Shown here one piece after another: positions 298 to 37,464 of a stretch of DNA of 64,000 nucleotides; within the stretch, counting starts at the first letter, position 1, and each line of letters begins with the position of its first letter. The stretch comes from Paragordius varius (Eukaryota; Animalia; Nematomorpha). The notes beneath the pieces were generated by a model. It was not told where the DNA came from, made no database searches, and was given only the letters and a program-made list of their open reading frames with translations. Where the stretch lies: positions 6,510,001 through 6,574,000 of the forward strand of contig OZ176054.1 in NCBI GenBank assembly GCA_964247055.1. The letters run 5' to 3'. Made by a program: the position numbers and the translations under genes.

Positions 298-3200
298 CTC
301 AATTTGCTTTTCAAGTGCATCCAATAGTGTTTGACATATATTAAGTGCTTGTTGACTATGTTGCTCAAACTTAGTACGTAAGGCTGATCTATGGATACAA
401 AAACAGTAAATATTTTAAATAAAGAAATAAATTATCATAGAGTCTATAAAAAATTTAAAAATCATAACAATCAATGTAAGTTAAGAGGTAATTTAAAATT
501 TATATGAGTAGAATTATTTATTTGACATACTTGTGTTCTTAAGATCTTCATTGTTAAAAAATGCAAATTTAGTATCATGTGTATTAAAAAATTAATTTAT
601 ATGACACGTTAATCAAAATGGTAGTTTTATCTATAAAAATACCATTTAATAAAAAATGAATTATTCATAAGTGAAAAATCTACTTTGATATGCATTCCTG
701 AAACCGTTGTTCGAATCGTTTAAACTCATTGTATCGTTCCTCAAAATTTTCCCCGAAAGTTGGTGAGCTGGTGCCAGTACCTTGCAACATATTTGTTCGA
801 TGATATGAGATGGAATCACCATGGCAACCATCGATATTAGCGCCATTATTTGCTGTTTTATACTTAGTTTTTGCATCAGCTAAAAGTCCAGAACTAGCTA
901 GACTGGAATCAAGCAAACGTTTTTCCAAAACCTCTTTTGCCGAAATGAAAAAGATACGATCCTTCGATTCTTGCGGGTTGGAAAGAACGCCAAGTTCATT
1001 CAACAAAAAGTGGGTTATGCGTTCCGTGTGTTGCTTAACCACCTTGTGTAGTAAAAATATATGGTTAAATATAATATTTGTATATGAGCAAAGGAATAGG
1101 ATGTAACAGTTAACGTATTATTAAAGTATAAATAACATTTGTTTGTTGGATGATGAAAAGATTATACAACTTGTTAATTATTAAAATATAATGCTCACCA
1201 CTTAGATAAAAAATCCTTATTATACATATATAATATATTATATACATGTATTAGGAATAATTATACGTTAAGTAGATTATAAAAAACTTGAGAGTTGCAA
1301 AAACAGTCATATTAATTAATTACAGTTGAGATATATTTCATATATATTGTAGTCGTTATAAAAGGATCCACAACTTTGTTAAAAAATTAGCTTTCACCCA
1401 TTTTAGGTAAACTTCTACACAATATTATCGGATTATTAGAATCGATAAAACAGCAAAAAAGTAAAACATTTTTAATAGTACATAAAGAAGATGACTCACT
1501 TTATCCGTATAAGCCTTGTCGAATTGGGTTGAGGCGTCCCATCGATTATTGAGGACAAAAACATTTGGGCGACTCAGTTTGCTTGCGACTTTGTGGAAAA
1601 AGTTTTTTTCCGTTTGCATAATGGTGGATTCGGCATTTGCTACAAGGATAAAAACATCGGCATCTTGACAATACTTATCAATCCAAGCATCAACATCCGG
1701 GTTCACATCAATGCCTAAGAAAGAAAGAAAGAAAAAATAAAAATTGGTAAAAAAAATTATTTATTTGTTGGAATAAATTATTTATATTTAGTGTTCCGAA
1801 AGGGAACTTGGTAAAAAAATAAAGATTGAACATCTATTATGCTTTATATATATATGATAGAAACGATTCTTAGTTATAACAGTATTATTTATTTAAAATT
1901 AATTAATTTTATACAATATAATTAACATCGGTTTATGATCATATTCACCAAAATTAACGCTTATTAGCGTAAAAATAAAATTATTTTATATGCCATGGTA
2001 TCAGATTAATGTTTAAAATCATACCATCTCTCAAAATATTATCTTCAAAATTATTTTATTTTATTTAATTGCTCAAAATTACTCTATTTATACCGCATTA
2101 AAAAGTCTAAAAAAATTATTTTTAAAATCAAATATTAAATCAACCTGGACTATCGACCAAGATAACGTCATCCCTTAAGAGGGGACATTTATATTTTGGC
2201 CAACACACATGTACTAATAGGTCTTGAGAAAGTTTGTCTGATGTCAAAGCATTCGCCAATTGTTCAACATTGGCGATACTTTCTTTAACGAAACCGGAAT
2301 TATTATTAAAACCATTATTATTGCTATTGCTATTACAAGAATCATTTTCGGCATAAATGTATGGTTCATCCGAGGAATTTGCGATTGTTTTATCAGAACT
2401 CTATGTAAAGTAGAATATTTGATGTGGTTTTCAAAAATAGCCTTCAAATATACTTTACAACATGTATTTAACCAAACATTCCATATTTTTAGTTTTCATA
2501 ATTTCAAAAGTTGAGTACTTTGTCTTAAAGGATACATGCGTATATATATATATATATTAAAAATTAATTACCATTACCCCATTTCCGATGCCTTCAACTT
2601 GAACGAAACAATTTGTGGTGTGACCTATGCCAGCTGGCAAAACCTTTTGTCCCAACATGGCATTGATAACGGTACTTTTTCCATTGCTAGTGCGACCGAA
2701 AAAGACAACCTAAAAAATTTTAAGCGTCATTTTATGAACATTAGAAATGTTTATATATAAGATTGTAAACCATAAAAATTTGAGCGGATTGTGGTTGCAT
2801 GACTTAAAAAATATTTTAGATTTTATTTTTTTTTAATGTTTCCATTTTTATTTTTTATTTAAAAATTATTTATGGTTTCATATATTTCACAGCCACTGTC
2901 ATAATACATTTGGAATAAATGAATAAATAAACAACAAACGGTATTATACTTTTCTATCTAAATAACATAGTAATCAAAACAGAAAACAATTTAAAAGACC
3001 GAAAAAATTAGATTAAATATTTGAAAAAAAAAGATTCTGTTTTCTGTAAATAAAGTATTTATTTAGAGACCTTCATGTGATTACGTCCCAATATTCCGAT
3101 GATCTTTTGCAATTTATCACCAGTTTGCGAATAAATATACTTTTCATCATTTGCTTCTGGCAAATTAATTTTATCAAAAGTCTTGAGTAAATAAATGATG

Positions 3201-3339: not shown

Positions 3340-3405
3340 TCTGTTAAATGAATGTAACGCGACAATTTTAAATTTTTAAATCGTTCGGTACAACAAGATA
3401 ATTTG
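3340..3405. promoter_or_regulatory. 66-bp head-to-head interval between the mitofusin and NudCD3-like start codons (probable bidirectional promoter or overlapping 5' UTRs)
   Basis: Divergent ATGs at 3339 (-) and 3406 (+). Regulatory role is inferred from geometry only. Confidence 0.45.
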
Positions 3406-5497
3406 ATGAAAAATATTGTTCAGTATAAGGATCTTACTTTGTATGATGACCCTAAAAAGTAAATAACAATTGTTATAAATCAGAAATCAAGCTATATTTC
3501 AAAAATATCCTGAAAGTTATAATGGTGCAATAAGACAATCGTTTGTATGGACGCAAACTCATAATGATGCTGACCTGAGAATCTATGTTCCAAATGATAT
3601 TAATTCATCCAAAAATTTAAAAATTGAGTTAAATACAAACGGTGTAATAATTTTTATAAATAACACTAAAGTATAATTGTTTGAATATTAGTTTTTTGAT
3701 AAAACATTTTATGGACCAATTAAAGCCGATGAATCCTTTTGGACCTTAATACCTTCCGATCATATACACGTAAGTGTGGGTTAACATTTGCATATTAATT
3801 AGCTTAAAATCACATACTATAAATTATATACCAATACCAATATACATGTTTACTCTCTAGTTTATGGTCCTATTTAGATTCGGATATAATAAAAACGACA
3901 ATTTATCATATAATATGGTGTGAACGCAATATTTAAATATTTTTTATCAAAAATAAATGATTTAAATTATTAATAAATATATTTTAATTTGTAGATTAAT
4001 TTGGAAAAACACGATTGCAAAATTTGGTCAAAAATGTTTGTGGATGAACCTCCAATTGCTATGGACGCATTGGAATTGGTTCAGGATATAGATGATTTGC
4101 CTGATGAAGAACATGACACCCTATCGCGACTAATGTATGATACACAACAAAAACAGATGGGGAAACCCACTTCGAAACAACAGGTTTTTCTATAAATTAA
4201 TTACATAAGGTATCTCTAACTGGGATTTTTATATATTAAATTACCTAAGGGAGATCTAAAATTTTTATGTTTATATAACACTTCAAATCAAATAAAAACA
4301 CTAATTGTTATTCAGTCCACTTATTGGGCATTGGATTCGTTTAGGATGCGTGCCATTAATCAGAAATTAATAACTGAAGCGCAAATCGTATATCATCGAC
4401 GTCAGCCCTGAGCAATCAATTCTTAAAGCTTTTATGAATCTAATCTTTAAATAAAAGTAAAAACTATTCATTTCTATATTATAAGTTAGTTTTCCAATTA
4501 TATGTATGATACACAAACACGATACTAGTCTTCAAATCCTAATGAAAAAGATTATCACAAATCATTTATTAAATTTTCTGAATTTTGGTACAAATATAAA
4601 ATAGGTAAAGGTTTTCCTTTTTTTATCATTGTGCTCGCTAACTTAGTTACATTTCAATGTTGATGTATGTTTATATAATTATAAATATAAATACTCTACC
4701 TACCGCTTATAAATTCAGTTAATAATGATCGTAAGTCATTATTATCACTATATTTATTGATGTATTACAATTAGCACACAACAAGCTAGTTTTAATTTCA
4801 TACAATACTCCAAAAGGGAGGAATAATGCATTCAATGACTACTATATCGTTAACATAGAAAAAAATTTCTTACATTATACATATAATAATTATAATGAAA
4901 ATGCGCAGCTATATATTTTATGTTTAACCGAAGAATTTGTCTGGACGCTTTCATATAATTAGGATTAAATTGATGTTTAATTGCTATAAAAATTATGATT
5001 TGGCCCGACCACTTATGAATGCATCAAAACAGACCGACCTATTACCACAGCCGTAACAGTAATATTTGATAAAATTTCTATAACTATAATTTGCTGAGAT
5101 TTTACCTATATGTGGCTTATTTTTTTACGGTTTAGTCATTTGTCAGACTCAACAGAAGATTAAATATGTTTAATTGCAAATGTTTGGAAATTGGATGGGG
5201 GAACTTTGTTTTTATGTGCGGGCCATAAACTCCCTTAAATTTATTAATTTTAAAAAAAATTAGCCATTTATGATTGATTTTATAGTTATTATAAGCGTAC
5301 AACAGCGCCAAATATTTTTGACGTTTTTTAAATATTCTTAAAGAATTATCCAACATTTGTATATAATTTGCCATAATTTAAGATTAAAAACATGTTTTTT
5401 ACAGATGCTCGAAAGTAAATTGAGAGAAGCATGGGACAAACCTGGGTCACCGTTTGCTGGAACGCCGTTTGACATCACAAAAATAAATATTTCATAA
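3406..5497 (+). CDS. NUDCD3: NudC domain-containing protein 3-like (CS domain co-chaperone), ~199 aa. Exons: 3406-3458, 3484-3670, 3692-3769, 3995-4183, 5405-5497
   Basis: FQKYPESYNGAIRQSFVWTQ, IKADESFWTL, LSRLMYDTQQKQMGKPTS and LREAWDKPGSPFAGTPFD match the NudCD3 signature segments as I recall them (FQKNPDSYNGAVRENYTWSQ; KKGWDAEGSPFRGQRFD). The first exon and start codon are not homology-supported. Confidence 0.88.
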
Positions 5498-6311: not shown

Positions 6312-7137
6312 CTAACAATTTTTCAACATGTTGAGATAAATGGTTTGACAAGGTCTATGCAATTCCAAAACATGTTTCGCATCACGTAAACTGAACCATT
6401 TTCGTTTTCGACCTATATTTATATATACATATTGATTATTCAATTATAGATGATATACATATAATAGAAAAATATATATTAGAATACAAATTAATATAGT
6501 ACCAAGTTTCAGTGATTCTTCCCAACATGGTAACTCTTCTTTGACCATAAACACATACACGTATGTTCTATGTTTTCTTTCGGAATTCTATGGTTAAATA
6601 TTGTTTATTAGATATATTTTAGGGAGTTTTTAGCCCACAACTACCTTATAAATATTTAAACACAGGAATATTTTTGAAAAAAATGTCGTATTGCACTAAC
6701 GATAGTTTTATTTTGACAATGCTAGTTGCATAACTATTTTTAATCATAACTTCATAATACTATAAAATATGTTATAAGTAGGAAAAAATTAAAATAATTT
6801 TAGATATTAAAAATACCTCGAATACACCCAAACATCTACCAAGTTGCCCCCTAATTCCAGCTTCTTCAAAAACTTCCCGAGAAGCAGCGGACATAGGATC
6901 TTCATGTGGTTCGACCCCTCCACCAGGTATTACCCAATGTTCAGGGCTTCGACTACTCGTAACTAACAAAATCTAAAAATATATTATTAAAGATAGGTTT
7001 TTAAATTAATAGGGATAAAAAATAAAAATAATACTAACCTCAGATTCGGTTTCATTCCTTACGCACACGCAAGCTGCCCGCTGTCTAAAACCATCTTCAT
7101 CGTATATTCGAGATTGGGCACACTTGTTCTTTACCAT
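6312..7137 (-). CDS. NUDT3: Diphosphoinositol polyphosphate phosphohydrolase (DIPP; NUDT3/4/10/11, Aps-like Nudix hydrolase). Exons: 7137-7039, 6972-6817, 6587-6503, 6412-6312
   Basis: RIYDEDGFRQRAACVCVR, LLVTSSR, Nudix box GGGVEPHEDPMSAASREVFEEAG, RKHRTYVY, WEESLKLGRKRKWF. Junction phases are consistent; TAG stop at 6314-6312. Confidence 0.95.
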
Positions 7138-7529: not shown

Positions 7530-8101
7530 TACTTGGATACAACACATTCATTTTAGTCCTTCGATTCAAATTGGGGTAGTTAAATACTCCAGGGGTGTTT
7601 AAAATTAAATTCTTTAAAAAATTACAGTAATCAAAACCATGGCAAAATTTTGCACTTATATAACATTAATAAACCAAAATATATAAAAAATTGTATTCAA
7701 AAATACTTGATATAACTTATTTTAAGCTAAAACTGAAAGGTAAAAATTTAGTCCACGTAACATGTGTGCAAGAGTAAAATTGAAAAATAATACAAAATAA
7801 TCCGCTTTATCGTTTTCTATCAATGTTAGATGTAATTTAAATAAATAATTAGCTTTAATTCTACCCTTAAAATTAAATGAAGACGCTATTAATATTTGCA
7901 AAATATAGATGGCGTCGAAGTAGTTGGACATTATACTTTTTTATCAAAACAAAATTTTATGTAGATATTTTGGCATATTTATATAATTTTTATCAGGTTA
8001 GAAGCATAAATTTAAATTGGGACCGATTCCTTCGGTAGTTTTTTTTAAAAATCCTAACTCTAATTATGGGGTATTTAGATATCCCAATTTGAATCGAAGT
8101 G
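7530..8101 (-). mobile_element. TTAA-associated piggyBac-like MITE, family A, copy 1 (reverse orientation)
   Basis: Ends ACTTGGATAC...CTTCGATTCAAATTGGGG and CCCAATTTGAATCGAAGTG followed by TTAA (8102-8105). Interior is homologous to copies at 8509, 12300 and 13516. Confidence 0.8.
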
Positions 8102-8508
8102 TTAAAGAGGACATGATATTTTTTATGGTGTAACCAAAAATTTGGACAATGAGTTAAAATAATATTGCATTACCTCTTTTTGGTAGTCCATTGTTATGTA
8201 ATTTAAATTCCTAAAAATTTATAAAATAAAAAACAGTATTTAACTTAAAAAATAAATATGTTGGGGTTCCAGACGCCGTATTTTAAGCGTTTGTTAATTT
8301 GTCATTATACAAATAATAATATTACCATTTTCATTCATTTTTATTTCATGCACGATAATGTTTTGAAATATTTTTATATTCCTAAGCTTTATCTTGATAA
8401 TTAACTAATGTTTAGAATTTTATTATCGAACATTGTTCTCCTGTCTTTTATTAAAAGCTCACATTTACAGTTTTTTAACTTCTAGAAAAAAAGACAGCTT
8501 CATATTAA

Positions 8509-9013
8509 CACTTCGATTTAAATTGGGATATCTAACCCCACACTAAATTTATATTAATAATAATAAAAAACTACTGAAGGAAATTGTCGATCAATTTTAT
8601 GCTTCTATCCAAAAACTTACATAAAAATGTAAAAATATCTAGATAATTTATTTTGATAAAAAAGTTACATGTCAAACTATATCGACGCCATTTTTATAAA
8701 TAGAGTTTTCAATTAATTTTTTTAAAAAAATTTAAACTAATTTTTTATTTAAATTACATTTAATATTGATAGAAATAGAAAAAGTGGTTTATTTTGTATT
8801 ATTTTTTAATTTAGCCATTTTTACCTTTAAGTTTCACATATGTATAAGTAATATCAAGTTATTTTTAATAAAATTTTTTATATATTTCGGTTTATCAATG
8901 TATAAGTGCAAACTTTTGCCATGGTTCAGATTCCTTCCATATTTTTAAAGTATTTTATTTTAAATAGGCCTGAGGTATCCAACTACCCCAATTTGAATCG
9001 AAGTATCCAATAG
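8509..9013 (+). mobile_element. piggyBac-like MITE, family A, copy 2
   Basis: TTAA (8505-8508) then CACTTCGATTTAAATTGGG; right end CCCCAATTTGAATCGAAG with the spacer deleted, then TTAA near 9014. Confidence 0.8.
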
Positions 9014-9292
9014 TTAAAAAAAGCTGGTTTTTAAATCAATAATTTGAGTTTTTGCTGGTAAATGACCTAAAAAAATTAATAATTATAGAATTCCAGGATA
9101 TATATTTATTTTGTGTTAGTTATTTATCACTTGGGAACAACGTATTCATTTCAGTCTTACGAAATGAGGTAGTTAGATACCCCAGATTGTTTAAATATAA
9201 ATATTTTAAAAAATATGGAATAAATACCATGGCAAAAATTTACACTATAAGATTAATGAACCGAATAAAAATTTCATTCATAAATATTTATT

Positions 9293-11300
9293 ACTAGCTG
9301 GCCCTGTCACGCTTAGCTGTGACGTTGCCCCACCGATATAATTATTCTTAATTATTTATAAAGATAAAAAAAATAAAAAACATATATACTAAAAAGAATG
9401 TTTTTAATTATTCTTTTACGAATTTTTGCATAGGCTTAAATATTGTTTATATGAAACTGACCATATTCAAACTATCCCTTATTAAAGTTAATATTCAACT
9501 ATCATTGGATTAATTTTAGGATTTTCGTTTTACGAAAGCTTGGTTAAAAGTTTCATTTTCAAATTGTGTCAGATGAGATCGAGGGTTATAAAAAGTAAAT
9601 CATTCGTGGTCCCTTTTTAAAGGATAAAATTATATATTAGAAATTCCCCAGAAAAGTGTTTAACAGAACTCGTATGGCTTCTTAAGTTTTTTGAAAATTA
9701 GCTCCAAAACGCCAATATGGTATGACGTCTCAGTTTTAAACCAGTAAACCCTTATTCATAAACCTTAATGGAAAAAGCGCTGAGTTAAATTCTTTGCCTT
9801 TATAGGGCAAATATTTGGAATCATCTTTGATACCATCGTCTCATGGGTTAAAAAATACCTTAACACTAAATAATCGTTATATGATGGCGTATTTTTAGGG
9901 CAGAAAGGCCCCACGGGTAATAAAAAGCCTGACCTTATTTTTTACCTAGTTACGGGTGATATTTCAAGCTTTTAATGAGCTCATATGGCTTCATAAATTT
10001 TCTGTAAATTAGCTCCAAAACAACGCAATTTCTATATAGTAGAGCAGTTTTTGGCGCGTACCTCCTCACCCAGGGGTAGGTATATTAAAGCGCTGAATAA
10101 AATTTTTGCTATCTGGTATTATCATGGCCATATGTTCCCATTGGTCTCATAGGTTTTCTGAAATTAGGCTGGTGACGCAGTTTTACGCGGGTAGCCCCTA
10201 ACCAGGCGCGAGACAAAAAAACGCTTGATTAAGATTTTTGCTTTAATTCGGGTAATACCTGGAGTCATGATTGATTTAATATGCTATCGTGGGGTTTTCG
10301 AAAAATTGCCTCAAAAAAATCATTCTATGGCGGTGCATTTTTAGGGCCAGGGCCTAATTAAGAGGTAATTTGATACAACTAACTCTACTTATTTTTGCCT
10401 TTTTACGGATAATATTTCAGGCCCTATTAAACTTACGTGGCTATGTTTTATGAAAAATAATTATTAAACAACGCGATTTCGATTTGGTGGTGCAGTTTTA
10501 GGCTGATACAAAGAAAGCGCTTCATTAAAGTTTTTGTCTTTTTACGGAGAGTACCTGGAATCATGATTGATTCCATATGTTCTCATTAGTTTTTAAAAAA
10601 ATTGCCTCAAAACTTAAAAATAATTGTGTGGTGGCGCATTTTTCAGGGCGGGAAGGGTCTAATTAACGGCTAATTCTCGACCTAAATTTTTGCCTTGTTA
10701 CGGGTAATTTTTAAGCAGCTATTGAACTCATATGGCCTAATAATTTTTCTGCAATTTAAAAGGCACGCTATCTCAATATGACGGGGCAGTTTTTAGCGGG
10801 TATCTCCTTAGCCAGCAGCCAATATAAAAAACGCAAGACTAAAATTTTTGCCTTTTAGCAGAGAACACCTGGAATCCAAACTTTTACGGTCATATACTCT
10901 GGGCGAAAATTAGATTCAAAAAGTTTTTTTGGGCACTTAATTTTTTAAAAATAAATGGCATTTTACGGGGGGAGCGGGTAAAAAGAGAGCCTAATTTAAA
11001 AAAGGGAGCCGACCATGTTTGGCGCAATCAAAAAAAAGTAAAAAAAATTATATTTGAAGTCGAATGGTCCAACACGTTTTCCGGAAAATTGTCTCGAAGC
11101 CACGATTTTTGTGGACTTGTGTTTTCAAAAAAACCGTTTTTACACGGGGCGGGCCCATGGGGGCCTAATGCAAAAAAGAGCGAAGGTCGGGACATTCATT
11201 TATGATTATATTTTTTTGACATTTGGATTTGATTGAGCCTACCAATTTTCCGGAAACAGATCACAAAACCAGCATTTTCCATTTTTATAAATATGTAGAT
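9293..11300 (+). mobile_element. Non-autonomous Helitron/Helentron-type (Lep1/DINE-like) element, ~2 kb
   Basis: 5' end ACTAGCTGGCCC with hairpin GTCAC-GCTTAGCT-GTGAC; 3' end TTTTATAAATATGTAGAT; T-rich flanks; no TIR or TSD; interrupts a MITE. Family assignment is by resemblance of the ends only. Confidence 0.6.
9640..10900. repeat. Degenerate ~150-bp tandem array (~9 units, two alternating variants) inside the Helitron-type element
   Basis: Core TTTTTGCCTT(T/G)TTACGG recurs near 9800, 9950, 10100, 10248, 10405, 10545, 10700 and 10855, followed by either TAATATTTCAAGC or AGAGTACCTGGAATCATG. Confidence 0.75.
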
Positions 11301-12299
11301 TACTTATTCAGGAGTAACACTGAAATGCGAAAAAGCCAAGATGACATGCGTGCATAAGCAAAATATACCTATTCTGTTTATATCATTGTTAAATGTGATT
11401 TTAATAAAAAAGTAAAATTTATTTTAGGCTTAGAATCAAATAAATACGATATTTTGCAAAAATGCGGCAAAATAAAAATGGCGTCCAAGTAGTTGGATAC
11501 GGGACTTTTACTCCAAAACTATATTTAGATATTTTGGCTTATTTATATAAATTTTATTAGGATAGAAGCATAATTTTAAATTGGTGGGCCTTTCATTAGT
11601 TTTAGAAAAATATAAAACTAATAATTGTCTGCGGTATTTAGATACCGCAATTAATCAAGTTTAAATATTAAAAAAATATGGCGTCGGATTGATGAAGAGG
11701 GTTATTCGTTTTACATTTTTCGAAAAAAAAATTTTGAAGCATTTTAAAAGACTAAGAAGGCATATTCTTAAATTTATAATAACACAAATACTTTTTAAGA
11801 TGTTAAAATTTTAATTCGCTTTGAGATATAGAACTCACCCAAGGTATGGGAGTGTTGTGGAAAAAAATAGCTTTCTAAAGTTTTTAGGTCTGAAATTCAA
11901 TACACTTTAATCGAGATAAATCATTGATATTTATATCTATAATTTGCAGTCAAAGGCAATTTACACTTTTAAATTAATTAGTATTATGATATGATTTTAT
12001 ATGCCACTATTTTAGATTAAAAAATAAATTCAAAAATATATTTTGGCGGCAAAAATATTTCGTTATTTTAAATGATTTATCATAGTACCTTTTACAATAA
12101 TTTTCGGCGAAGTAAAAAATTGCACAAAATTTGTTGTCAAAAAGTTTCATGTAATTTTTTAATTATAAATATTTTTTAAAAATAATGGCCTAAAAGGCCT
12201 GCAATAACATTTAATTTTTACAGCTTTTCCCCTTTTTTAGCCATTCTAAATAGATATGGATTAAAGACTGTGGGATCAAAAATTATATAATATTTTTAA

Positions 12300-12830
12300 C
12301 ACTTCAATAATTGGGGTATCTAAATGGCATTTTTAAATAACTACTGAAGGAAACTGTCCTAATTTAATATGCATCTATCCTAATAATTATATAAATAAGC
12401 CAAAATATTTAGATAAAATCTTGTTATGAAAAAAAAAGTTCCACGTCAAACTACCTCGATGCCATTTTTATTTTACAAAAGTTTTGCAAATATCGTCTTC
12501 ATTTTATTTTAAGGGTAAAATTAAAGCTAATTTTTTATTTAAATTACATAGAAAGTAAAAAAAGTGGTGTATTTTGTATATTTTACAATTTACCGATGCA
12601 CGCCTGTTAGGTTGACTAAATTTATACATTTGGGTTATACATTAAAATTAATAATATTTTTAAATTTTAAATAATAATTTGTATATATTTCGGTTTATTT
12701 ATGATATATAAGTGCACAATTTTGCCATGGTTTCAATTCCTTCCATAATTTATAAAGTATTTAATTTTAATCAGGCCTGGGTTATCTAACTACCCAATTT
12801 GAATCGAGGACTGAAATGAATGTGTTGTAT
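12300..12830 (+). mobile_element. piggyBac-like MITE, family A, copy 4 (right end truncated)
   Basis: TTAA-CACTTCAATAATTGGGGTATCTAAAT ... CCCAATTTGAATCGAGGACTGAAATGAATGTGTTGTA. Confidence 0.75.
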
Positions 12831-13254
12831 TTACCATTTTAATATCAACGATTTGGCAAAAATAAATCAAATTTTGGTGGAACTAATCTTGAAGTAGAGG
12901 TTTTTGCAATTTTATTTTTTTGTTTTTTAAGAATAATATGCCTAAAAGACCATAGATAAATTTTTAGAAATTCATCACGCTTTCATTTTTGTAGACGCGC
13001 GAAGGTTTCGGGGGCTCTAGCTTTAAGCTGAAAGATTAAAACAAACTACTGTTTTGAAAGTTTTTTTAGTTTAAATAAAACGTTTTATGACAATTAATAT
13101 ACCCCGGGGCCATGGAAAAGTTAAATATCATTTGGCCAAATCCATAAAAATTTAATTTTCGGCGCTTTTTAATTCAAATTTTTCTAAATAGGGAATACAA
13201 CAGGAAAATATATGTGCATTATGGTTATAAATATAATTAATTTCGCGAGCTCTA

Positions 13255-13435
13255 AGAATGCAACGTATTCATTTCAATCATTCGATTCAGATTGGGTTTA
13301 GATCAAGGCTTGTTTTAATTTAAATATTTCAAAAATATGGAATAAATTAAAGCCTGGCAAAGGTTTACATATACATAACATTAATGGACCGAAATATAAT
13401 AAAAAATTGATTCAAAAATATTTCATATTACTTAT
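13255..13435 (-). mobile_element. piggyBac-like MITE, family A, fragment
   Basis: CAACGTATTCATTTCAATCATTCGATTCAGATTGGG...GGCAAAGGTTTACATATAC matches the start of copies 1 and 3. Confidence 0.6.
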
Positions 13436-13515
13436 TAAGGGGTGAACCCGGGAAATTTAACCAAAATGATATGCGTTCATAAGCAAAATATAAAAAAATA
13501 GTGAAATCTTTTTAA

Positions 13516-14089
13516 CACTTCGATTCAAATTGGGGCATCCAAATACCCCAGACTAAACTTAAATTAATATTTTTAAAAAAGTATTGAAGAAAACGGTCCC
13601 AATTTGAATTTATGCTTTTATCCTGATAAAAATTATATAAATATGCCAAAATAGTTTGATAAAATTTTTTTTGAAAAAAGAAGCTCCATCTCAAAATACT
13701 TCGACGCCCTTTCATTTTACAAAACTTTAATATCGTCTTCTTTAATTTTAAGGGTAAAACTAAAGTTAATTTTTTAAATAAATTACATTTAACATTGATA
13801 GAAATAGAAAAGGGGTTTATTTTGTATTATTTTTTAATTTTATAATTTGACACATGTCACGTTGACAGAATTTTTTCCTTTCGGTTTTAGCTTAAAATAA
13901 GTAATATCAAGTATTTTTGAATTAAATTTTTTATATATTTCGGTTTATTTATGTTATATAAGTTCAAAATTTTGTCATGGTTTCGATTCCTTCCATACTT
14001 CTTTAAGTATTTGATTTTAAACAGGTCTGGGGTATCCAACTACCCCAATTCGAATCGAAGAACTGAAATAAGTGTGCTGTATCCAAGTG
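13516..14089 (+). mobile_element. piggyBac-like MITE, family A, best-preserved copy (574 bp)
   Basis: TTAA on both sides (13512-13515 and 14090-14093). 9-bp TIR CACTT(C/G)GAT. A ~33-bp internal inverted repeat is flush with the left end and 29 bp inside the right end. Confidence 0.85.
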
Positions 14090-15109: not shown

Positions 15110-23180
<8,071 letters not shown>

Positions 23181-25530: not shown

Positions 25531-28500
25531 TTAAGTTCGAACATTAAGTTGATCCTTTGTCTGTTCATAGTATTCTTGAGTACTTTGATCATTTGCAGCG
25601 TAATCCGTTTGATTCTCCGAGGCATAACTTTGTGATTGAGTGTTATTATAATCAGCAGGGGCATTGTCATAGGCATAAACGGGATTACTAAAATCTTGAC
25701 CACTGGCAATAGTTGAGGAATTCGTTAAAGATAACTGTTGAAGTTCTTGTCCATTTTGTAATTGCGTTGGAATATTTGCCATATCATTACCGATGGAAGA
25801 AATCCAGGGTGCCCACCACCAATTAGAGCACTGAGACCAGCGCTCGGCATTAACATTGTAATCCAGTTGCCTTTTACGGTACAATAGTATGGCTAACAGT
25901 AGAAAAATAAATTATAATATGGTTAAAAGTAAAATTTCTTCTAAAGGACAACCATACTTTTTAAACCTTGATGATCAAATAAACCTATCGTTTTGCATCG
26001 CAAAATGAGAAATAGTGTAATATTAGTTACATAATCATACATACATTTCATAATATTAATTATAGAGTTTAGGAAAATATCGTAAATTAAAAAATTATGG
26101 TTTTTTTCAATAATTTAACATTGTTGTTTGACTTCACTTTTACTTAAACGATTTAATATCTATTTAAGCAATCAACAAAATGCTTTTATTTAAACCAGGG
26201 GTGTCCAACACGAATGGCTTTGCAGGCCGCATTTTGCATCAAAAAATGTGAAGGGCCCCATTCGCGAAATATATGGACATTTGTTAATAGTTTATTAAAT
26301 TGCAAACATAATGTAAACACCTCTATTAACCTTTTTGATAATTGATTGCCAAAATCTAGATCAACTTATTCAGAAAATTTGTTCAAAAATCAATTTTATT
26401 TATTCATAAAATTTCTCGCGAACTGCATAAATAATTTTAAGGGCCTCATGTTGGACACCCCTGATTCAGAAATAAATGAAATACATAATTTGTAATACCT
26501 TCTTAAAAAAACATAAATGCTTAAGCTTATTCCTATGTGTAAAAATAGATAATTATTGATTAAAAATGCATAATGAAAATATGATTTATTTTTAGAGACT
26601 ATATTTTAAATTATATAATAATTGCCGCATATACAAGGTGTTTGTTTCTTTAAAATCGCAAAAATATTTACATGATCGCTCTATTGATAATATACATATA
26701 TATGTATAAAAAACGGTTTTTATATCCCTCACCTAATGTAGTGCAGACGAAAGCTATGGTACATATAGCTATGAGTAAAATCATATATGCCTGTTTATAT
26801 TCCTTATCACTTTTCGTATTTTGAAGCGCATTTAGTGTTCCTTTGGGATTACCATTGGATACAGTAGTGGTTGTTTTCTCAATCTTTACCTTTCCCACGG
26901 TTTTGAATCGGGTATTAAGGTCAGCCGGTGGTTCGGGAGGGGCGACAAACCTGGAACGATTACGTGGGAACAAATATTTTCCTTTATACACATCAAGGGC
27001 GTAGGAAGAACCACTAGTTCTTGGTTTCAAATCCGCAATCGTTGGTAAAATGATACAATGCCCATTTATGCAATATTTGCCCTTTCCTTTGCCGCATGCC
27101 ACACCATTCGGTAGAGAATGATTATAGTAATCGGATTTATCCGTCTAACAACAACATTGCAGAAGGATAATTGGAAAATAAAATTAATTAACTGGTGTGC
27201 AAAAGTACAAAATATAAATGTGATAATTATAAATTGTTGATTGATTTACATTATTTAATATTTATAGAGAAAAAATAATTTTTTTCTTATAATATTAATT
27301 TTACTAGGGAAATGTTTGCTCACATAACTTAACAATGCTTTTTTACCAAAGTAAAATTCAGAGCTTTAAATTTTTTAGGCCTACCGTGTACCATACCATT
27401 TCATAATCTAAAAATTAATTATTTAACAGAATTATTTCATATTCATACATGTTTGGGGTTTGATCTGAATTTACCTTTTTTGTGCATAAAAAACGACAAT
27501 TATCAGTGAATGAGTATTGCTTGGATTTACAATTATCGATTAACTCCTTTTTGTAATCTTTCTTTTGGGGACACTCTTTGTCCTACATCATCCACAATAA
27601 TTAGATAAAAGCAGTAATAAATAAACATTGTGATATAAAATATAAAAAATTAAAATTATACATAGACAAGACATAAAAAAATAATATATTATAATTTTTT
27701 ATTACCGCAGTACTTTTTAAACTTAATTGATTTTCTTAATGAAAATCATTAGTGCTAAACTGCAAAGGTTTCGTCGTTATAATTTCCATTTTTATTGCAA
27801 ATACAGTCTTCACATATATTATGGCTTATTCATATTATTTGGTCAATTTTACATACAGTAGCGTGTGTCATAAAACAATTGTTGTTCGTAATTAAATAAA
27901 CAACTTAATGGAAGTTGGGAAAAAATTGTTTACAAATTTGTTGTTGTTTTCCATACAATACTGTAGTACTGTCAATCGACCAACTACTATATATAATAAT
28001 TCATTCCTAAAGCAGATATATTACCGGGATACATGTAACAATTTTGATCTCAAAGAAATCTTTTCCACATCCCCGACCCCCGAAATTGGGTAAGGGCATA
28101 CTACACGTCCTAATCCATGTCATATGGGCGGCATCAAAACAGCTGTCACATTCAGAAAATGGTTTCCAATCACTCCAACCTCCATCCGTGATTGGTAACT
28201 TCAATTCCTTGGGACAAGGTTCACAAGTTTCATTGATACAAAAGGAAGGCATAGATGAACCACCACAATAACTTCCCTTAAATAAAGACATATAAAAGAA
28301 CCACTCATCCAAAATAATTATCTTGTCTCAAGGCCGATAAAAATTCTATAGCTATGAAAAAGCCGACTCAAAAAACCCATTATAGAATCCATATTTTTCT
28401 ATAGGATTCTGAAATTTTTAACGCTTAAAATGGTGACTCAAAATTTTGCTATTTCGACATTTAAGCCATAAAAAATTGGAGCCATACTTGAGCCGGCCTT

Positions 28501-31500
28501 CCACGAAATAGCTCTATAAAAGCTCTTGCACATGGCCTTTAAATTATGTCTTTGAAGCTGAATATTTTCCGGTTCTTATATACATATATTTATACATATA
28601 TAAACAATTTCCATAATTTTAATGAAAGATAATGGGATTCGTAAAATTACTCTTTAATCACGTGGAATAGGGCGTAAATATATGGAAAATAATTTCGTCA
28701 ATATTAAGACTTGGATTAAAATATTAATTTAAACTAATTCTGTCATTTCCATAAAGATGAAGTGTGGTCAAATGAAGAGAATGACATTATTTGTATAAAG
28801 TATAGTAAATTTTTCTCCTAAACCAAATTTAATAAAGTTTTTATGTTTTACTTATAACATCCATACCTCTAGTACCCTATCCATGTTGAATGTAGATATC
28901 TCGCCCAGGGAGGACACTCTAAAACATTGAGTACTTTTACAAGGGTCATAACCATTTTTATTGTTGACATAATTATCACTAGGATCAATCAATGCATAGG
29001 AACTTAAACCGTATTGTAGTTGACATTGTTCATGAAGTGTCACATTTATGCCGGATTGATTATAGAGACGGTAATTGTAACGTTGCGCCTTCAAAGCCCA
29101 TTTCCCCATACACCATTGATCGGCCAATTTTTCAGCCAATTGCTTTCTGCTACAAGCCGACCAAATTACGCCACCAGAATATGGCGCCATTATTCCATGC
29201 ACACTGATACATTCGGGAGTTTCATCGTGACTAAGGCCCATCCTGTTTTTTCCATTTGACACACAAAAAATAAATATTTGTGAAAAAAACAACAACTAAT
29301 TTTTCCTACGTTTTTAAATTGATTTAAGGTAATAATTTTTAAATAATTAAATAGCTAGATACACATTAAGATTAAAAAGATTGAAGGTTTGGAATTCGGC
29401 TTAGTATCTATATAAGCACCATTAAAAAAGGGATTGTAAAGTTAATATATGGTATTAGTGTATCAAATTTATTGAATAAACAAACATTTTTTTTATAAAT
29501 ACCGTTTTGTTTTGATTTTTATCAAAAGTGCCAATTAATTTTTAATTTTTTGTAATCTCATATTCTCCTTATAAAATAAATGTAAAATTTTCCATTGTGG
29601 TATAAACTTATGGCTATGCTGCAAGACTCTAGTTTTCCGATAAAATCGTTAGGTAAACCCTGTATTTTTATCACAGAAGCGAGATTTTGGTTTTAATAAA
29701 GTCAAGTACCATAGTTTTTCACGCCATCTCTATTTTTTGTCATTTACCAATACACCTTCGAAATGACCCCAATCATGGGAATAAGATAGGCATTATGTAA
29801 TAACAAATATTTTTAAATCTTTTTTCAAATTTATTTTTTAAATTTTTTTGGCATTATTATATATACTATAAAATTTTAATAATTTGATAATTTATTGTTT
29901 TTGGTTTTCATTATAATGGCAACAAAAAATAATTAAATAATAACACAGCATAATGGCAATGAAATCAGCATATACCGCTAATTATCAAAAATTTGTATAA
30001 CAAAACACTAGTAATAAGCCGTGGCGTTTGTATACTACTTATGCCTAAAATCTGGAGAAAAATTAATAACTAAAAAAAGAATCCTGACCGTTTTTAAAGC
30101 TGGAACGGCAGCATCTGACGGTATTTTAAATACTGTAATTATATTCCACCATACAATGAGATTTTTAGCGCCAAAGTAATTACCTCATGCTGATCTTCAT
30201 GCATGCACTTTTCCAATTTTAAAATCAGGTCCAAGTTTCTTATTACACTCATTATAAATTGATCATATCTTCCCACAGACATACCAGTTTGTGGGTATTT
30301 TGGAGTCCTCATAATGAGCTAATAAAAATCCCTAAATTCTCAAATTTTAGATTATAATTTATAGTATATGGAAAAGCTGAATATTAATCTTTGCAAATCA
30401 AGTTAATTAATTTTAATTTATTTATCTCAAAGTTTCCTGATCCTGACAGGTTTGGAGCTATGCATTTTTTTTCCACAATCGGGGATTGGTTAATATGAGG
30501 GGAATATGCAAAATATATATATAGTAACATTTATGCTAGCCATTTCACATTATTGCTGATGACCAATTGGTAAGACAATAACGTATGAGATATAAAGCAA
30601 ATTTTGTTCATAAAATCAAATGTTATAAGATAGGACGCAAATGTTTTCCACACATTTGTTGCTTTTTACTCATACACTACTGCGCTGCCAAATAGCCAAA
30701 AAATATGTAAATTGAGCAACATTAATGTGCATAATATATCCATCTATCTATATATATATATATATACATGTGTCCAATTTCATGGGCAACTGGTGAATCC
30801 GAAATAAAACCAACACCCCAACCTGCTTCAATGACGGCACATCCTCCCTTACAAATGCTATCTGAGTTGGCGCCACCCGCTAAAGCTGAACCCTCTGGGC
30901 CCCATAAATTGACCCTATTATATAATATTAATCACGATATTTTTTTATGAAATTGTTATAACGAAAAAAATATATTTGGTTTAAACCAGGGCTGATCAAC
31001 ACAAGCGGCTTCGCGTGCCGAATTCTGGATTTTATGTATCTGGCGGACTGAATTCGAAATATATTAGCGATTCCTATATATTGCATTAGATGTCAAACAT
31101 AAGAGTGTAAAGGAATTTATGAACACATATACTAAAATTTATTTGAAAAATTCCGTAAGTTCATGGCCATTTGGAAATACTCTGTTCAAAAAATTTGTTT
31201 ACGATTTTTTACTTATATTTTGTGAATAATATTTTTTATTACCAAATTGTACATTTGGTATTTTTTTATACTTCCCGCGCGCATATTGGACGGCGGTGTG
31301 GCGGACACCCCTGGTTTAAACTGTTTGAATTTTTATATAATGTGTTGTTTTGCTATTTAAATATATCTTTTTTATAATGACACAAACGTAAATTATACCA
31401 TTCTTAGGCAGTATTATTGGTTAATAATTGTAAAAAGTGAAAAGTCTATAAGCCAATAATAGTGCCCTTTGTTGTATTTACTATTTGTCACAAATTAATA

Positions 31501-34500
31501 AATTTTTAGCAATGTATACTTACCCATGCTGTAAATAGGATTTTTTGCGTTAAAGTGGTAAATAATATATATATATATATATAACAAAATTCAAAACGCT
31601 TGAAATTTTTTTACCCAGTAAATAAAACGTTTGCATCCCATGTAGAATTTTCTTTGAATAATTCATACATCAACTTGGTATATTGATAAAACTTATTAAG
31701 GTACTCCCTGGCATTTCCATCCGTTTGCATCATTTCGGGTTGATATGCCAGCAAAAAAATTTGGGTTATTGTTAAATCAATGAATTTTCTAATATAAAAA
31801 AAGAACATTTCGAAAATAACAGGACCAATTTTTTTAAATATCTGTGATCCAACTAAGTTGGAAATATTGTATTACAGTGTGAGTAAGTATACATTCCTAG
31901 AAAGTTATTAATTAATTATAATAGTATATACAACAAAGGGTAGTATTATTGGCTTATAGTTATTTTTTGCTTTTTACTATTATTGGCCAATACTGCCCTG
32001 AATTGTATTTACTATTTGGCAATAATTAATAACTTCCTAGCAATGTATACTTACTCATACTGGAAACTAATTTTTGTTTTCATTTTCTATATAGCATGCA
32101 ATCAATGAGCAGTAAATTAGTTGTTGCCCTATTTTGTGCTTTTTAACAATCTGTTAAAATCTTAATTCTTCCAGGGGCCACATCATATTTAGTCATAGAC
32201 TTATAAACAATAAAACAGTAAAATTCATATTCATAATAACTAGTTTAATTTAATTATACTCACAAAAATTAATTTATTAAATTTGGGTTACTGGCGCCCC
32301 CAAATCTCCCTATTATCAAATAATTTATGACATAAAATGATAATTGAATGTAATTTAAAATCCATGCAAATAAAATCAACCAAATTATAAAAACTATTTA
32401 AGTTTTAAACCATAGGTTAAACCTTCTTTTTGTTAAATATTAATATTTGTGGTTTTTAACAATCACATATGGTGCAAACCACAGAATAATTAATGTCTTA
32501 ACCTTCCGGATTTATTCTCTTCATTGAAAGCTATTTATTAGAAACGCTTTATATGTAATTTTTCATCGACTTTCAAAAAACCATAAAATATTTTTACACT
32601 GGATTACAAATTTTGACCTTTGTGTGCCATTTCCAAAGTTTTAATATTGTTTCATTTAAGCATACAATTATAAATTCAAAAAAATTGTCTATATCTTAAG
32701 AATTTAAGTTTTTTTTATATCTTTGGCCCTGATTTAGCATTAGATTCCAAATTTTCATAATAAAAGTTTCAACTCTTTCCCTAAGCTTCAAACATAGCAT
32801 GTTAATACGTCATCTTAACTAAATCGATGTGAAAGTTATTTGGTTACATGGGGTTAAATACTAAACTTTTAAATAATTTCAAATTTTCCTAGGCCAAGTA
32901 TTTGTAAAAATCTTATAAATTAACTAAATACATTAGGATTGCATTATTAAAATTTGAATATAAATTGTTGAAAAAAACTTTTAAATTTTATCAATAAAAT
33001 TATATTCCCTCACTAATATACTAAACAATTAAAAGTGAAATTTATTCCGTTTATGAAATGTTAAATCCTTAAAACTATAATTTAATTGCAATTTTGAATT
33101 TCGCCATATAAAAAATTAATAATAATAAAAGGTAATTTTTTAAAAATAAAAATAATATTTTTGACTGCTATAAAAAAACTATATAAAACCAATAAATAGG
33201 CGATTTAAACAAAATAACTCTCACGTTAAAAAACATTTTTTGAACAATGTTTCTATTTTTATTCATTAGTTTTGAAAATATATCTATGTACAAAAACTTT
33301 GTTTCATATCTATGATATTAAGCCCGAATAAAAACAGTTTTTAATAATATTTTAATTTTAGATTTACTGTTACTATGATCGCGAATGTCAAAAAATGCAA
33401 GAAACTCGAGTCGCACCAAAATGTGCCTAGTACATTTATCACATTAGTATTCTCTTTGATTAAAAATAATAACTTGGAGTTCCGTTTTTTTTGAAAATTA
33501 TTATTCCAAAATTAACAAAAAAATATAAAAATACCCAAGTGTGGGATGGTGATAAAAGGTATCAATTCGATTCATTAGAATGTAGATGTAGCGAATGGCA
33601 TTTTCCTCATTCCCCAAATTTATGATATCTTTGAAGGCATAAACATCCATATAAATTGCAAGATCGGCCGAATATGTCTTGTACCGAGAAATATTGTTTT
33701 CACTGTCTGATCTTTTAAGTTCATACTTACTATCATCTACATTAAATAAAAATAATTATACATTTAATAAAATTAACAAGGTTGATTTAATAATTAAATA
33801 TTGGCATCAGATGATATGTATAGTACTTAATCCCACAAAAAATAAACTGGTTCATTTGTGTTAAATATGATCACGTATTAAAAGGGTGAAAGGTGTGTAT
33901 ACAGGCCCCAGGTGCCATTTTAGCGGATCTTAAAATGATATTTTTATAATTTAATTTAAGTTTTTGCTTACTCTTTTCATTAATAAAGATGGGGAGTCAT
34001 CAAGGGTTTATTGGGCACAGCAAATATTCGCTTAGTCACTGAAAATAAGTTACTTGATTTAGCGCTTTTTTTCAAAATCCAAATTTTCGTTATAATATTT
34101 ACTATATTACAAAAGAAATTTTAGAGCAATATTTAAACATATCGCCAAAATCAAAAACTCTCCAAATACGCGCACTTTTGATTAAATATATTGGAATAAA
34201 AAAACTATTAGTTATCTTCATATTTTAGATGTGTGATTAGCTAACACCCCACTACTTTGATAGCGAAAAAGCTGAGGGCCTAAGCAGGGTTTTCACATAT
34301 ATGCTGAATTTTGCATTAAAAATTAGTTTTTCTCAAAAGCTAAAATAAATTTTAGATTCAATTTTAGCCCATGTCAAAGCATCACATTACTATTCAAAAA
34401 CGAAAGTTCTCGAGCCAATGCATTGTATTTTTTAAATTTTTTATGGGTGCAAAAATTTGAAGTTTTTTTGACAAATGGTTTTGAATAATAATTTTTAATA

Positions 34501-37464
34501 AAATGGCTCAACATAATTAAAAATGATATCAGTTATATAAGTAATCAGCTGTTTAACTAAGAAAAGACGTAAAGAACGCAGACCATTAGTTTTATACAGC
34601 CCATTTTGTTCATCTGACACCAAATATTAACACATAATCTCGCTAATAGTTAGCGTTTATTTTTATAATTCAGTAATGTCGGATGTTATGCGTGAAAACG
34701 ATCATGCATAGAAGAAAAGGGCATTTATAAATCATTGTTTGCTGGTTTAGACATGTGGTATTACTCCATCGATTAAAACATGTGAAACATGTATTTAGAA
34801 ATTGTGGTTTAAGTTTGAAAAGAGTGAGCACTCTGGCAACTGCGATGATGATACAGTGCAAGAGTTGTATCGGATGATGACTCAACTCAAACTCAGCGGG
34901 AATCGGTGGAGCCATTAAATAAATCAGAATAAAATCAGTGAATTTCTACGAATGAAGAAACTCAGTAAATAGGTCCTGCACAATTTGAATGAACGTCCGA
35001 TCGAAAATCTCAAAGTGACTTGTAAAACCAGATTCAAAGTCACGAAACGAAATTATTTTGACATCGAATTGTGACGAGTGATGAGAAATGGCTTTTTGTA
35101 AACCCAAGCCCGAAAAAATCGAGACTCTTGCCAAGCCAATCCATTTACACCGAGGCCAAATCGCTTGGTAAACGCCATGCTCTGTGACAGTTGTCAAGGC
35201 GATAATGTGCACTATGAACCTTTCAAACCCGGTGAAACTGTTGATCTCGTAAGCGATCGCATAATTTAAACAATAAATTAATCGAAAAACATGGGAATTA
35301 GCCAGAACAAATAGAAATTTTGCTACATGACAGTGATCCGTCTAACGAGGCAAAACCACTGGAAGACACATGTTTTGTCCGCCGAACTTTACTGAGCATC
35401 TGAATCATAAATCAATTGGGCTAACCCTTGTAGAGCAGCAGCTTAATAATCTTGAAGACTTGGGTTTGTCACAAAAGACAATCATTTTTCTTTGGCCTTC
35501 ATACACTCTCTGAGAGATGGGCGAAAAGTTAGAAACCGATGGACAATATTTTCAATAAAATTAATAATTTTTTTCCTTTCAATATTACAAGTACTTTTTA
35601 TCAAAACGGGCAAAAATTTTAACAAAATCAACCTAATATATTAGTTAGCCTGTCCATTCGCACATAGGTTTTGCTGCCAAACACCTTACATAAGCGAGTT
35701 TATTAAAGATAAAGCTTTTTAAATTTAAATGATAAAATTAAGAGTTATTTATGTGATAATGTTATACAGCTGAATATTAATATTAAATTTTATGTGCAAA
35801 AAAATTGTAATACTTAGAATCATATAAAACGTTCTTTATTATAAAAAAACTTATAAAAAATCACATTCGCTATTGCACCAAGAAAAATTTAATATTTGAC
35901 TTGGGTTTTCTATAAAAAATCAAACTCATTGTGCTAAGTTTTTTCCTTACGATTAAAGAATCATGATAAATCTGATATATAATTTTGTACACTATGTTGT
36001 GTCTTAATTACAATTTTACAAAGTGTATATATAATATTTTACTTTATGTGTAAATACCTAGACTGGTAAGGAAATCATTAAATTCAAAGTGTTTATATGG
36101 CTGTTTTACTTTTTCCCAGCACATTTGAAATTGAGCACCATCGCTATGTAAGGGTTTAATGTGAAAGTTTCCTTTGGACGTTGTGATGACCAAATCCTGT
36201 AAATAAATTATTAGTTAAAGGCAAAGATTGAGCAGAGTCGCAGCTAAGGGAGGAAAGGGGGCTAATGCAACGGGCGCCATGGTTGAAGGGGTGCCGGATT
36301 TTAAAGGTATTTGAAAGTTATAATTTTAAATAATACATAAAAAATCACCCATTTATGAGTACGGTTTGAATTATTTTTTTAAATGCAAGGGGTTTCATGG
36401 AGAGGGAGGCGAGCATTAGAAATGCAAGCTATGCCTTCGAGACTGGGGCTATCGCATTTTTATTATGTTTTCATTGGCTTAAATGCTGCATGTTTATATT
36501 ATAGTTATGAACTGATATATTTGAAATATATGAAACACAAAAATCTACACAAGAAACTTTAAAGCTGGATAAATCATAATTATAAGTGGGCTTTTAATCT
36601 AATTAGCCTCATTGTGAAATTTATTTAAGCGCTCCCTACTTTGTAAACAAAAGATTGCAATTATATTTAAATATCTGTTTGGTTAAATTTTACATTTTTA
36701 ATATTATAGTTTATTTTAATTTTTTTAAAATAGTTTTAAGTTTATGACTAGTATTTTTAAAACTGATACCATTCATCATTAATGACTTCACACCTAGTTT
36801 GACGCAACCCTAACAAGGTTTGGATTGGTTGCGCTAAAAAATGTTATGGAGAATTTTACCAAGTAAGTAGGTTCCACTGTCACAGAAATCAAAGATTCAT
36901 TCGTGATTTGAACAATTTTAATATTATTATCATCCTGTTGGTGAGTCGTAATGTAAATTGAGTATGGTTGATATGTTTGACCTTGCATGAAACATGGGGC
37001 ATTTTCTTGATCGATGGTTCGATATAAATTTGTTTTCTCGTGATTTACCACGTATACAAAATCATGTTTGGGTGTTGTTGGATTTGATCGTAATAATCGT
37101 GATGATTTTGGCCAAAGAGACAAGGTGATGTAGGGTATGGGCTGATATTTATCAGGGTATGAAAACAAAAATTTTTCGGTGTTAACTAACGTAACGTTAA
37201 TTCTAATGGGTCGGGATGGATTTATTATTTTGCGGTTACATAATTTGGGATGCCACATGACACCGGACCAAATGTGTGGGGAGAGGGGTGAACTCTTGAG
37301 AGCTATATCATTCCAACTGATTTCAACCTGTTGGCAATCTTAACACTTTTTATTATAGACAAAAAATTAATTTTACTCGTTTGGTCAATTCTTGACCCGT
37401 CATTCCTTTTCGATCCTACGAATCTGATCCAAATTGTTAGATACATAAATATAATAAAGTGCAT
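25531..37464 (-). CDS. Membrane-anchored ADAMTS-like zinc metalloprotease (M12B), ~912 aa. Exons: 37464-37377, 37338-36860, 36196-36058, 33736-33535, 31788-31615, 30914-30768, 29242-28867, 28276-28025, 27582-27475, 27144-26733, 25892-25531
   Basis: Signal-like MHFIIFMYLTIWIRFVGS; prodomain (APCFMQGQ, KGNFHIKPL); ELKR/S processing site; zinc motif HEIGHMMGLSHD split across two exons; Met-turn GIMAP; Cys-rich module; TSP1 DGGWSDWKPFSECDSC...RTCSMPLPNFGGRGC; second Cys-rich module (PNGVACG...CINGHC); TM AYMILLIAICTIAFVCTTLAILL followed by YRKR. The 5' exon junction is less certain. Confidence 0.88.
26196..26463. mobile_element. hAT-type MITE (268 bp)
   Basis: TIR CAGGGGTGTCCAACA / TGTTGGACACCCCTG; degenerate 8-bp flanks ATTTAAAC / ATTCAGAA. 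Confidence 0.85.
30987..31313. mobile_element. hAT-type MITE (327 bp)
   Basis: Ends CAGGGCTGATCAACAC and GTGGCGGACACCCCTG; perfect 8-bp TSD GTTTAAAC (30979-30986 and 31314-31321). Confidence 0.9.
31405..31531. mobile_element. Partial copy of palindromic CAGT-ended MITE
   Basis: GCAGTATTATTGG...GCCAATAATAGTGCCCTTTGTTGTATTTACTATTTG...GCAATGTATACTTACCCATGCTG matches 31875-32062. Confidence 0.7.
31875..32062. mobile_element. Palindromic MITE (Tc1/mariner/pogo-like ends, probable TA target)
   Basis: CAGTGTGAGTAAGTATACATTCCTAGAAAGTTATT pairs with AATAACTTCCTAGCAATGTATACTTACTCATACTG; homologs at 31405 and 46478. Confidence 0.8.
34525..35640 (+). mobile_element. Decayed mariner (Mos1-like, DD34D) transposon; transposase pseudogene ~34676-35558
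   Basis: Frameshifted motifs SIKTCE, DDDSTQTQRE, HRIVTSDEKW, TPRPNR, HYEPFKPGETVD, LHD, ERW...TDGQYFQ* are collinear with Mos1. Right end AATCAACCTAATA-TA. Left boundary approximate. Confidence 0.88.

Follow-up and report, generated by a model that had tools for sequence, protein, structure and literature searches.

Can one animal gene carry spliceosomal introns of 21 to 29 nt near its start and introns of more than 2 kb further on? The question arises from the window, by which we mean the whole 64-kb stretch of contig OZ176054.1 of the hairworm Paragordius varius analyzed here. A sequence-only reading had proposed that four of the five genes whose 5' ends lie in it need GT-AG introns of 21 to 38 nt. 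Six genes were recognized:

299-3339, minus strand: 5' part of a mitofusin (MFN) gene that runs past the left window edge; ATG at 3339; introns of 29, 361, 177, 430, 457, and 295 nt
3406-5497, plus strand: NudCD3 gene, 199 aa; introns of 25, 21, 225, and 1,221 nt
6312-7137, minus strand: NUDT3/DIPP-like Nudix gene with a NUDIX domain; introns of 66, 229, and 90 nt
15110-23180, plus strand: DLD gene, 500 aa; 11 introns, of 23, 83, and 28 nt, then 370 to 1,525 nt
25531-37464, minus strand: ADAM/ADAMTS-like metalloprotease gene, ~927 aa; 10 introns, the first of 38 nt, the others of 330 to 2,321 nt
58741-63447, minus strand: 3' part of a Sox gene, with the end of the HMG box followed by long Asn/Gln-rich exons; its 5' end lies beyond the window

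No additional gene emerged from a codon-bias scan of the window, whose GC content is ~27% overall and ranges from 20% to 37% per kb. Spliced gene models were searched exon by exon rather than as joined proteins, and one query was an alignment pairing a Ciona homologue and one exon of the window; human DLD and human MFN1 were seen solely as PDB protein matches. The mitofusin was identified by a Pfam match to the Dynamin_N domain and a weak match of exon 1 to MFN1 in PDB, and its GTPase region has two lineage-specific insertions (2146-2400 and 686-1042, minus strand), one Asn/Ser-rich and one of ~40 aa. In the protease (25531-37464, minus strand), an intron interrupts the HExxHxxGxxHD zinc motif, which is intact. 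The ADAMTS-like Cys-rich and TSP1-like part is followed by a predicted membrane segment and cytoplasmic tail, a predicted layout that is an ADAM/ADAMTS hybrid. Downstream of the Sox gene, ~21 kb (37500-58400) hold no recognizable gene; a regulatory role is possible for the purine-rich and microsatellite tracts at 53400-57600.

Introns were cataloged from mitofusin, NudCD3, NUDT3, DLD, and the protease, 34 in total. All are GT-AG, and the exon frames close in all five genes. The lengths are 21, 23, 25, 28, 29, and 38 nt, then 66 to 2,321 nt, with a median of ~450 nt. The class below 30 nt thus comprises 5 of the 34 introns of the window, and the 38-nt intron falls outside it. The six shortest are as follows:

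3182-3210, minus strand: mitofusin intron 1, 29 nt, GT-AG, phase 0
3459-3483, plus strand: NudCD3 intron 1, 25 nt, GT-AG, phase 2
3671-3691, plus strand: NudCD3 intron 2, 21 nt, GT-AG, phase 0, with two in-frame stops
15189-15211, plus strand: DLD intron 1, 23 nt, GT-AG, phase 1, preceded by the targeting-peptide exon
15511-15538, plus strand: DLD intron 3, 28 nt, GT-AG, phase 1
37339-37376, minus strand: probable protease intron 1, 38 nt, GT-AG, phase 1

The coordinates, lengths, and GT...AG ends originally proposed were correct for all six, and so was the claim that each leads to a stop if unspliced, with an in-frame stop 1 to 135 nt past the donor. The count of four genes in five also held, as the fifth, NUDT3, has a first intron of 66 nt and no ultra-short one. 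Kilobase-long introns do occur in the same genes, the longest being 2,321 nt (33737-36057, protease). One of the six lengths, 21 nt, is a multiple of three. The interiors have 15% GC, against 32% in exons. In intronic DNA, GT and AG would fall at fixed ends with a chance of ~0.0015 per site, or ~0.013 per site if a one-codon slide is allowed at each end. Removal of the five segments below 30 nt restores the NudCD3, DLD, and mitofusin frames without a gap relative to homologues.

The closest comparison comes from NudCD3. A search with exon 2 gave first matches of at most 59% identity, and a second NudCD3 search led to Gordionus sp. m RMFG-2023 (XP_065324682-4), a member of the same phylum. Among the fetched proteins, Gordionus is the top match for all four scored exons, 2 to 5, with a summed score of 518 against 421 for Limulus, the runner-up. 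NudCD3 and NUDT3 also lie tail to tail at the Gordionus locus, where the GC content is 27% and a NUDT3 exon is 87% identical to that of the window. In sequence, gene order, and intron positions, the window is closest to this nematomorph, and a myxozoan, dicyemid, or orthonectid source was rejected. The 25-nt intron splits a Lys codon in phase 2, and the same codon carries a phase-2 intron of 43 nt in Gordionus, 1,725 nt in Limulus, and 81 nt in the fish Denticeps. The best placement of NudCD3 exon 1, without gaps, is immediately ahead of the Gordionus intron, but the match is weak (5 of 17 residues identical); exon 2 contains no Met. Around the 21-nt intron, the region has 99 codons unspliced and 92 spliced, and Gordionus has 92. 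A 44-nt phase-0 intron of Gordionus lies one codon upstream of this site, giving exons of 184 and 81 nt, compared with 187 and 78 nt here. As Limulus, Chamberlinius, and Denticeps have no counterpart, the 21-nt intron is, on the gene models compared, common only to Gordionus among the species checked. The longer in-frame alternatives for the two NudCD3 introns are 43 and 48 nt; at the 21-nt intron, the 48-nt one is the sole alternative below 75 nt and costs nine residues.

Gordionus NudCD3 introns measure, in order, 42, 43, 48, 43, 44, 17,079, and 540 nt, the five short ones lying within positions 10105-10775 of the locus (L002). Gordionus is thus like the window in NudCD3 intron positions, in the short-5'/long-3' layout, in its 27% GC, and in NudCD3-NUDT3 order. 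It differs in that its five short introns, at 42 to 48 nt, are about twice as long and in that it retains the NudC N-terminal exons. The Gordionus genome is 288 Mb with 63.8% repeats, and the paper describing it does not mention the 42- to 48-nt 5' introns or the 17-kb intron.

The window NudCD3 is without the NudC N-terminal domain (the first three Gordionus exons, ~100 aa), and nothing upstream matches it; judging by the gene model, this domain appears to have been lost. An AG at 3396-3397 would permit a phase-1 upstream exon as in Gordionus, and no such exon was found there. The mitofusin and NudCD3 start codons stand head to head, 66 bp apart (3340-3405), which leaves almost no room for a promoter or 5' untranslated region. 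Since the 10 kb upstream of Gordionus NudCD3 hold no called gene, the head-to-head pairing looks lineage-specific.

In DLD, the exon upstream of the 28-nt intron corresponds to human mature residues 34 to 77 and the downstream exon, from its second full codon, to residues 80 to 111. This match leaves exactly one split codon, so 28 nt must be removed. A phase-1 intron lies at the same codon in an animal locus (L003, 743 nt) and in three fungus-like loci. A donor 9 nt upstream, giving a 37-nt intron, scores 8.5 versus 5.9, and its use would delete the conserved residues GIE. The 23-nt intron follows an Arg-rich exon resembling a targeting peptide, and its L003 counterpart, also in phase 1, measures 596 nt and lies one codon further upstream. 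In both the window (R-L-Y-S) and L003 (R-Y-F-A), nine residues separate the motif from the FAD domain's first Asp. Two 44-nt alternatives would cost either the R-L-Y-S motif or the first FAD-binding strand. Because this peptide is poorly conserved, the 23-nt intron is, by alignment, the least tightly fixed of the five.

Mitofusin exons 1 and 2 align without gaps to an animal locus (L083), the first over 32 residues and the second over 37, and both sequences have FLK at the exon end. In L083 (63 nt) and a nematode-like locus (L084), the intron lies one base downstream, in phase 1; the phase 0 seen here is then best read as a one-base slide. Alternatives to the 29-nt intron are 50 nt, which needs a GC donor and costs 7 residues, and 71 nt, which costs 14. 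The protease is less constrained. Its 38-nt intron joins an exon resembling a signal peptide by hydropathy to a 524-nt exon without shifting the frame; weaker sites would give either of two 44-nt in-frame alternatives, and no homologue of the protease 5' end was obtained. Its length is within the range of flatworm microintrons and near the Gordionus sizes.

Taken as a set, the 25- and 28-nt introns match other species in exact codon and phase, the 21- and 23-nt introns are one codon off, and the 29-nt intron is one base off. Homologous introns in other animals, 43 to 1,773 bases long, lie at or next to the sites of the 21- to 29-nt introns, and the longer in-frame alternatives at the five sites remove 3 to 14 residues, mostly conserved. 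From these alignments, the five GT-AG segments of 21 to 29 nt are almost certainly genuine spliceosomal introns, and the 38-nt protease segment is probably one as well. Of the three displaced introns (3671, 15189, and 3210), two lie one codon downstream and one lies one base upstream of their homologues. These shifts may stem from sliding of the introns as they shrank or from compensating indels in variable loops.

The short introns are not scattered along the genes. Intron length rises with position in the coding sequence (34 introns; Spearman, 0.73; P = 9e-7), and a within-gene permutation of this gradient gives a P value of 0.00016. None of the six introns below 40 nt begins more than 401 nt from the ATG. 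Short introns make up 6 of the 11 introns within 450 nt and none of the 23 beyond (P = 0.0003, with a cutoff picked after seeing the data). This gradient is opposite to the usual trend, which is for first introns to be long (PMC2518113).

The long introns had been described as filled with transposable elements, which proved true in part. Repeats were found in the 2,321-nt protease intron (mariner) and in DLD introns 8, 10, and 11 (MITE-like), but 14 of the 21 introns of at least 300 nt have no repeat match inside the window. Two elements were delimited:

34670-35540 (ends approximate), plus strand: degenerate mariner transposase remnant in protease intron 3, from a PDB search
18648-19084, strand not assigned: MITE-like inverted-repeat element in DLD intron 8, from self-BLAST and from terminal repeats

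One mariner piece (35062-35184) matches the Mos1 transposase in PDB with an E value of 7.5e-5, and a second piece matches weakly; Pfam detected neither. Related MITE-like copies lie in DLD introns 10 and 11, and the family covers 27% to 42% of introns 8, 10, and 11. Elsewhere, nested copies, 65% to 83% identical, of a 500- to 600-bp inverted-repeat element fill the NUDT3-DLD intergenic region (7531-9295 and 11359-14309). A second MITE-like family occurs in protease introns 4 and 5 (31407-32065) and in the gene-free region (46435-46685), and short open reading frame pieces at 45111-45446 (plus strand) resemble, by eye, a hAT transposase C terminus.

Splice signals were compared between the 6 short and 28 longer introns; with n = 6 and post hoc tests, these statistics serve as leads only. 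Short donors follow GT(A/T)(A/T)A, with A at +5 in all six versus 8 of 28 long introns (P = 0.002, post hoc) and G at +5 in none. The last exon base is A in four of six short introns versus 7 of 28 long ones (P = 0.07). Acceptor scores are low in several short introns, and position -3 is A in three of six, against 2 of 28 long introns (P = 0.03, post hoc). At positions -9 to -6, T is scarcer in short introns (5/24 versus 59/112; P = 0.006, post hoc, n = 6 introns) and A is more frequent (13/24 versus 36/112; P = 0.06), with no consensus branch motif; a scarcity of T here has been described for myxobolids too. Overall pyrimidine content is not significantly lower (P = 0.27, n = 6). A U12-type identity was considered and rejected, the RTATCCTT donor and the TCCTTAAC branch being missing from all six. 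An introner origin was likewise set aside, as the positions are old or hairworm shared and the six introns are, by inspection, alike only at their ends. An Rfam search of the window returned no RNA family and no snRNA.

We consider it highly likely, as far as sequence comparison reaches, that the 21- to 29-nt segments are ordinary U2-type introns that have been shrunk by deletion, most of them at positions long established in animals. A hairworm ancestor would already have had short 5' and long 3' introns, and deletions in the window lineage would have about halved the intron floor relative to that of Gordionus. Splicing would proceed by intron definition, the major spliceosome pairing splice sites across the intron. 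An exon end rich in A followed by the minimal donor GT(A/T)(A/T)A would suffice, and branching may take place in an A-rich, U-poor patch 6 to 9 nt before the AG that stands in for a pyrimidine tract. The long downstream introns would be removed by the same spliceosome through stronger U-rich acceptors, with transposons tolerated, and may have grown partly by transposon insertion. Confinement to the 5' end most likely reflects removal of insertions beside promoters; cap-proximal spliceosome loading may contribute or account for it instead. One counterweight is that three of the five positions are offset from homologues by 1 nt or one codon, so that slides or compensating indels must be assumed. 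The inference of the sequence-only reading, a spliceosome with a relaxed minimum length, is sustained insofar as the introns appear spliceosomal and lie below the usual animal floor. With tiny and kilobase introns in the same genes, the spliceosome must handle both. A relaxed minimum alone, however, does not explain confinement to the first ~400 nt.

That confinement is also the starting point for a more far-reaching proposal, in which this hairworm lineage evolved an altered major spliceosome (U1, U6, Prp8, SF3b, or U2AF). The 21- to 29-nt introns would then form a distinct class, removed by a separate route only near the cap or promoter, beside normal splicing of kilobase introns. The strictness of the 5' confinement and the A residues at +5 and -1 of the short donors would fit such a class. 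However, 5' clustering also occurs in Gordionus, flukes, and Gyrodactylus, at larger sizes, canonical U2 and U2AF are retained in myxozoans, and insertion bias alone can yield a gradient. We regard this proposal as tentative and rather unlikely.

If the introns are real, they might instead be poorly spliced, retention and an early stop amounting to either a leak or a regulated brake on expression, by analogy with microsporidia, whose median splicing efficiency is ~25% as cited in PMC13644364. Every one of the six yields a stop on retention, and several have low acceptor scores, as this reading would predict. In 85%-AT DNA, however, chance alone would produce such stops, and five of the six lengths shift the frame regardless; DLD and mitofusin are, moreover, housekeeping genes with intact frames. 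Inefficient splicing of this kind seems improbable.

More doubtful still is that the true introns are longer and use neighboring sites (37 to 71 nt), which would bring them near the 42 to 48 nt of Gordionus. In-frame alternatives do exist at every site, several of them near 43 to 50 nt, and the 37-nt DLD donor outscores the 28-nt one. They would, however, discard GIE in DLD, FLK in mitofusin, and the end of NudCD3 exon 1, which are conserved, unlike intronic DNA, and would leave NudCD3 nine residues shorter than its Gordionus homologue instead of equal to it. Longer introns are most plausible at DLD intron 1 and in the protease.

An assembly artifact, with junk inserted into continuous exons or real introns of ~45 nt collapsed in the consensus, is hardly credible even in DNA this AT-rich. 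GT-AG ends stand at homologous intron positions at five sites, homopolymer and dinucleotide runs in the five short introns do not exceed 4 nt, long TA runs are intact elsewhere (e.g., DLD intron 2), and errors would not be expected to track gene polarity. Stop codon reassignment or nonspliceosomal excision of the IRE1/tRNA type, although the 21-nt segment keeps the frame and IRE1 introns measure 23 to 26 nt, is already contradicted by the sequence and has a negligible chance of being right, as window genes end in TAA or TAG, five of the six lengths are not multiples of three, the CNG-CNG motif of IRE1 is absent from the ends, and the positions match spliceosomal introns of other species.

Ordinary U2-type introns of this size have few animal precedents. 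Among the 51 animal genomes surveyed in a September 2026 paper (PMC13644364), introns below 30 nt were reported only for myxobolids and Dicyema. Myxobolid introns have medians of 22 to 27 nt with long-read support (PMC13644364), and Dicyema japonicum has a mean intron length of 38 nt; the genomes are 67.5 Mb (Dicyema) and 74.9 Mb (Henneguya) (PMC13644364; PMC6736024). Like the window, these parasitic animals have GT-AG introns of 20 to 30 nt at conserved positions; a donor reduced to roughly GTa, a weak or absent pyrimidine tract, and A residues before the AG may be further common features. Unlike it, they are dominated by tiny introns, whereas here such introns are 5 of 34 and 5' confined, beside a median of ~450 nt, and the animal is an ecdysozoan related to Gordionus, with its 288 Mb and 64% repeats.

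The layout is closer to that of neodermatan flatworms. Opisthorchis felineus has a 37-nt intron peak, 5' clustered, in a 684-Mb genome, for which intron definition was proposed (PMC6530080), and Gyrodactylus salaris has a mode of ~32 nt at intron positions 1 and 2 (PMC4040987). As in the window, a 5'-clustered short class stands beside kilobase introns, in the flatworms with a large genome and loss of the pyrimidine tract. Flatworm microintrons escape default annotation thresholds, as would the short introns of the window. They differ in their modes (37 and ~32 nt versus 21 to 29 nt), and, as flatworms belong to another phylum, the likeness is convergent. Tiny introns are also known from Stentor (15 to 16 nt), Paramecium, and microsporidia, as cited in PMC13644364. 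Those of ciliates and microsporidia are, like the window's, spliceosomal and below 30 nt; unlike here, the organisms are unicellular and nearly all their introns are tiny. To our knowledge, they have no class of kilobase-long, transposon-bearing introns in the same genes.

Earlier, dicyemids, Paramecium, microsporidia, and nucleomorphs had been listed as the precedents, a list that omits myxobolid myxozoans (median, 22 to 27 nt; PMC13644364) and flatworm microintrons (PMC6530080). Given microintrons in a 684-Mb flatworm genome, very short beside long introns in a noncompact genome has precedent; the sub-30-nt size in this lineage does not. We found no mention of introns in the hairworm literature considered. 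On the gene models, the window combines myxobolid intron size with fluke layout in a third phylum.

If true, this makes nematomorphs the third animal lineage with introns below 30 nt and the first ecdysozoan one, a new origin. That the short class is a 5'-confined minority sets it apart from general genome compaction. In practical terms, default aligner and gene-finder thresholds would cut the 5' ends, with their targeting and signal peptides, off many genes here. Here, unlike in myxobolids and Dicyema, a second species of the phylum has these introns at double length, which opens the question of minimum intron size to a genome pair. Were the spliceosome altered, the changes responsible for the lower limit on intron size in animals would be pinpointed by comparison with Gordionus, whose floor is ~42 nt.
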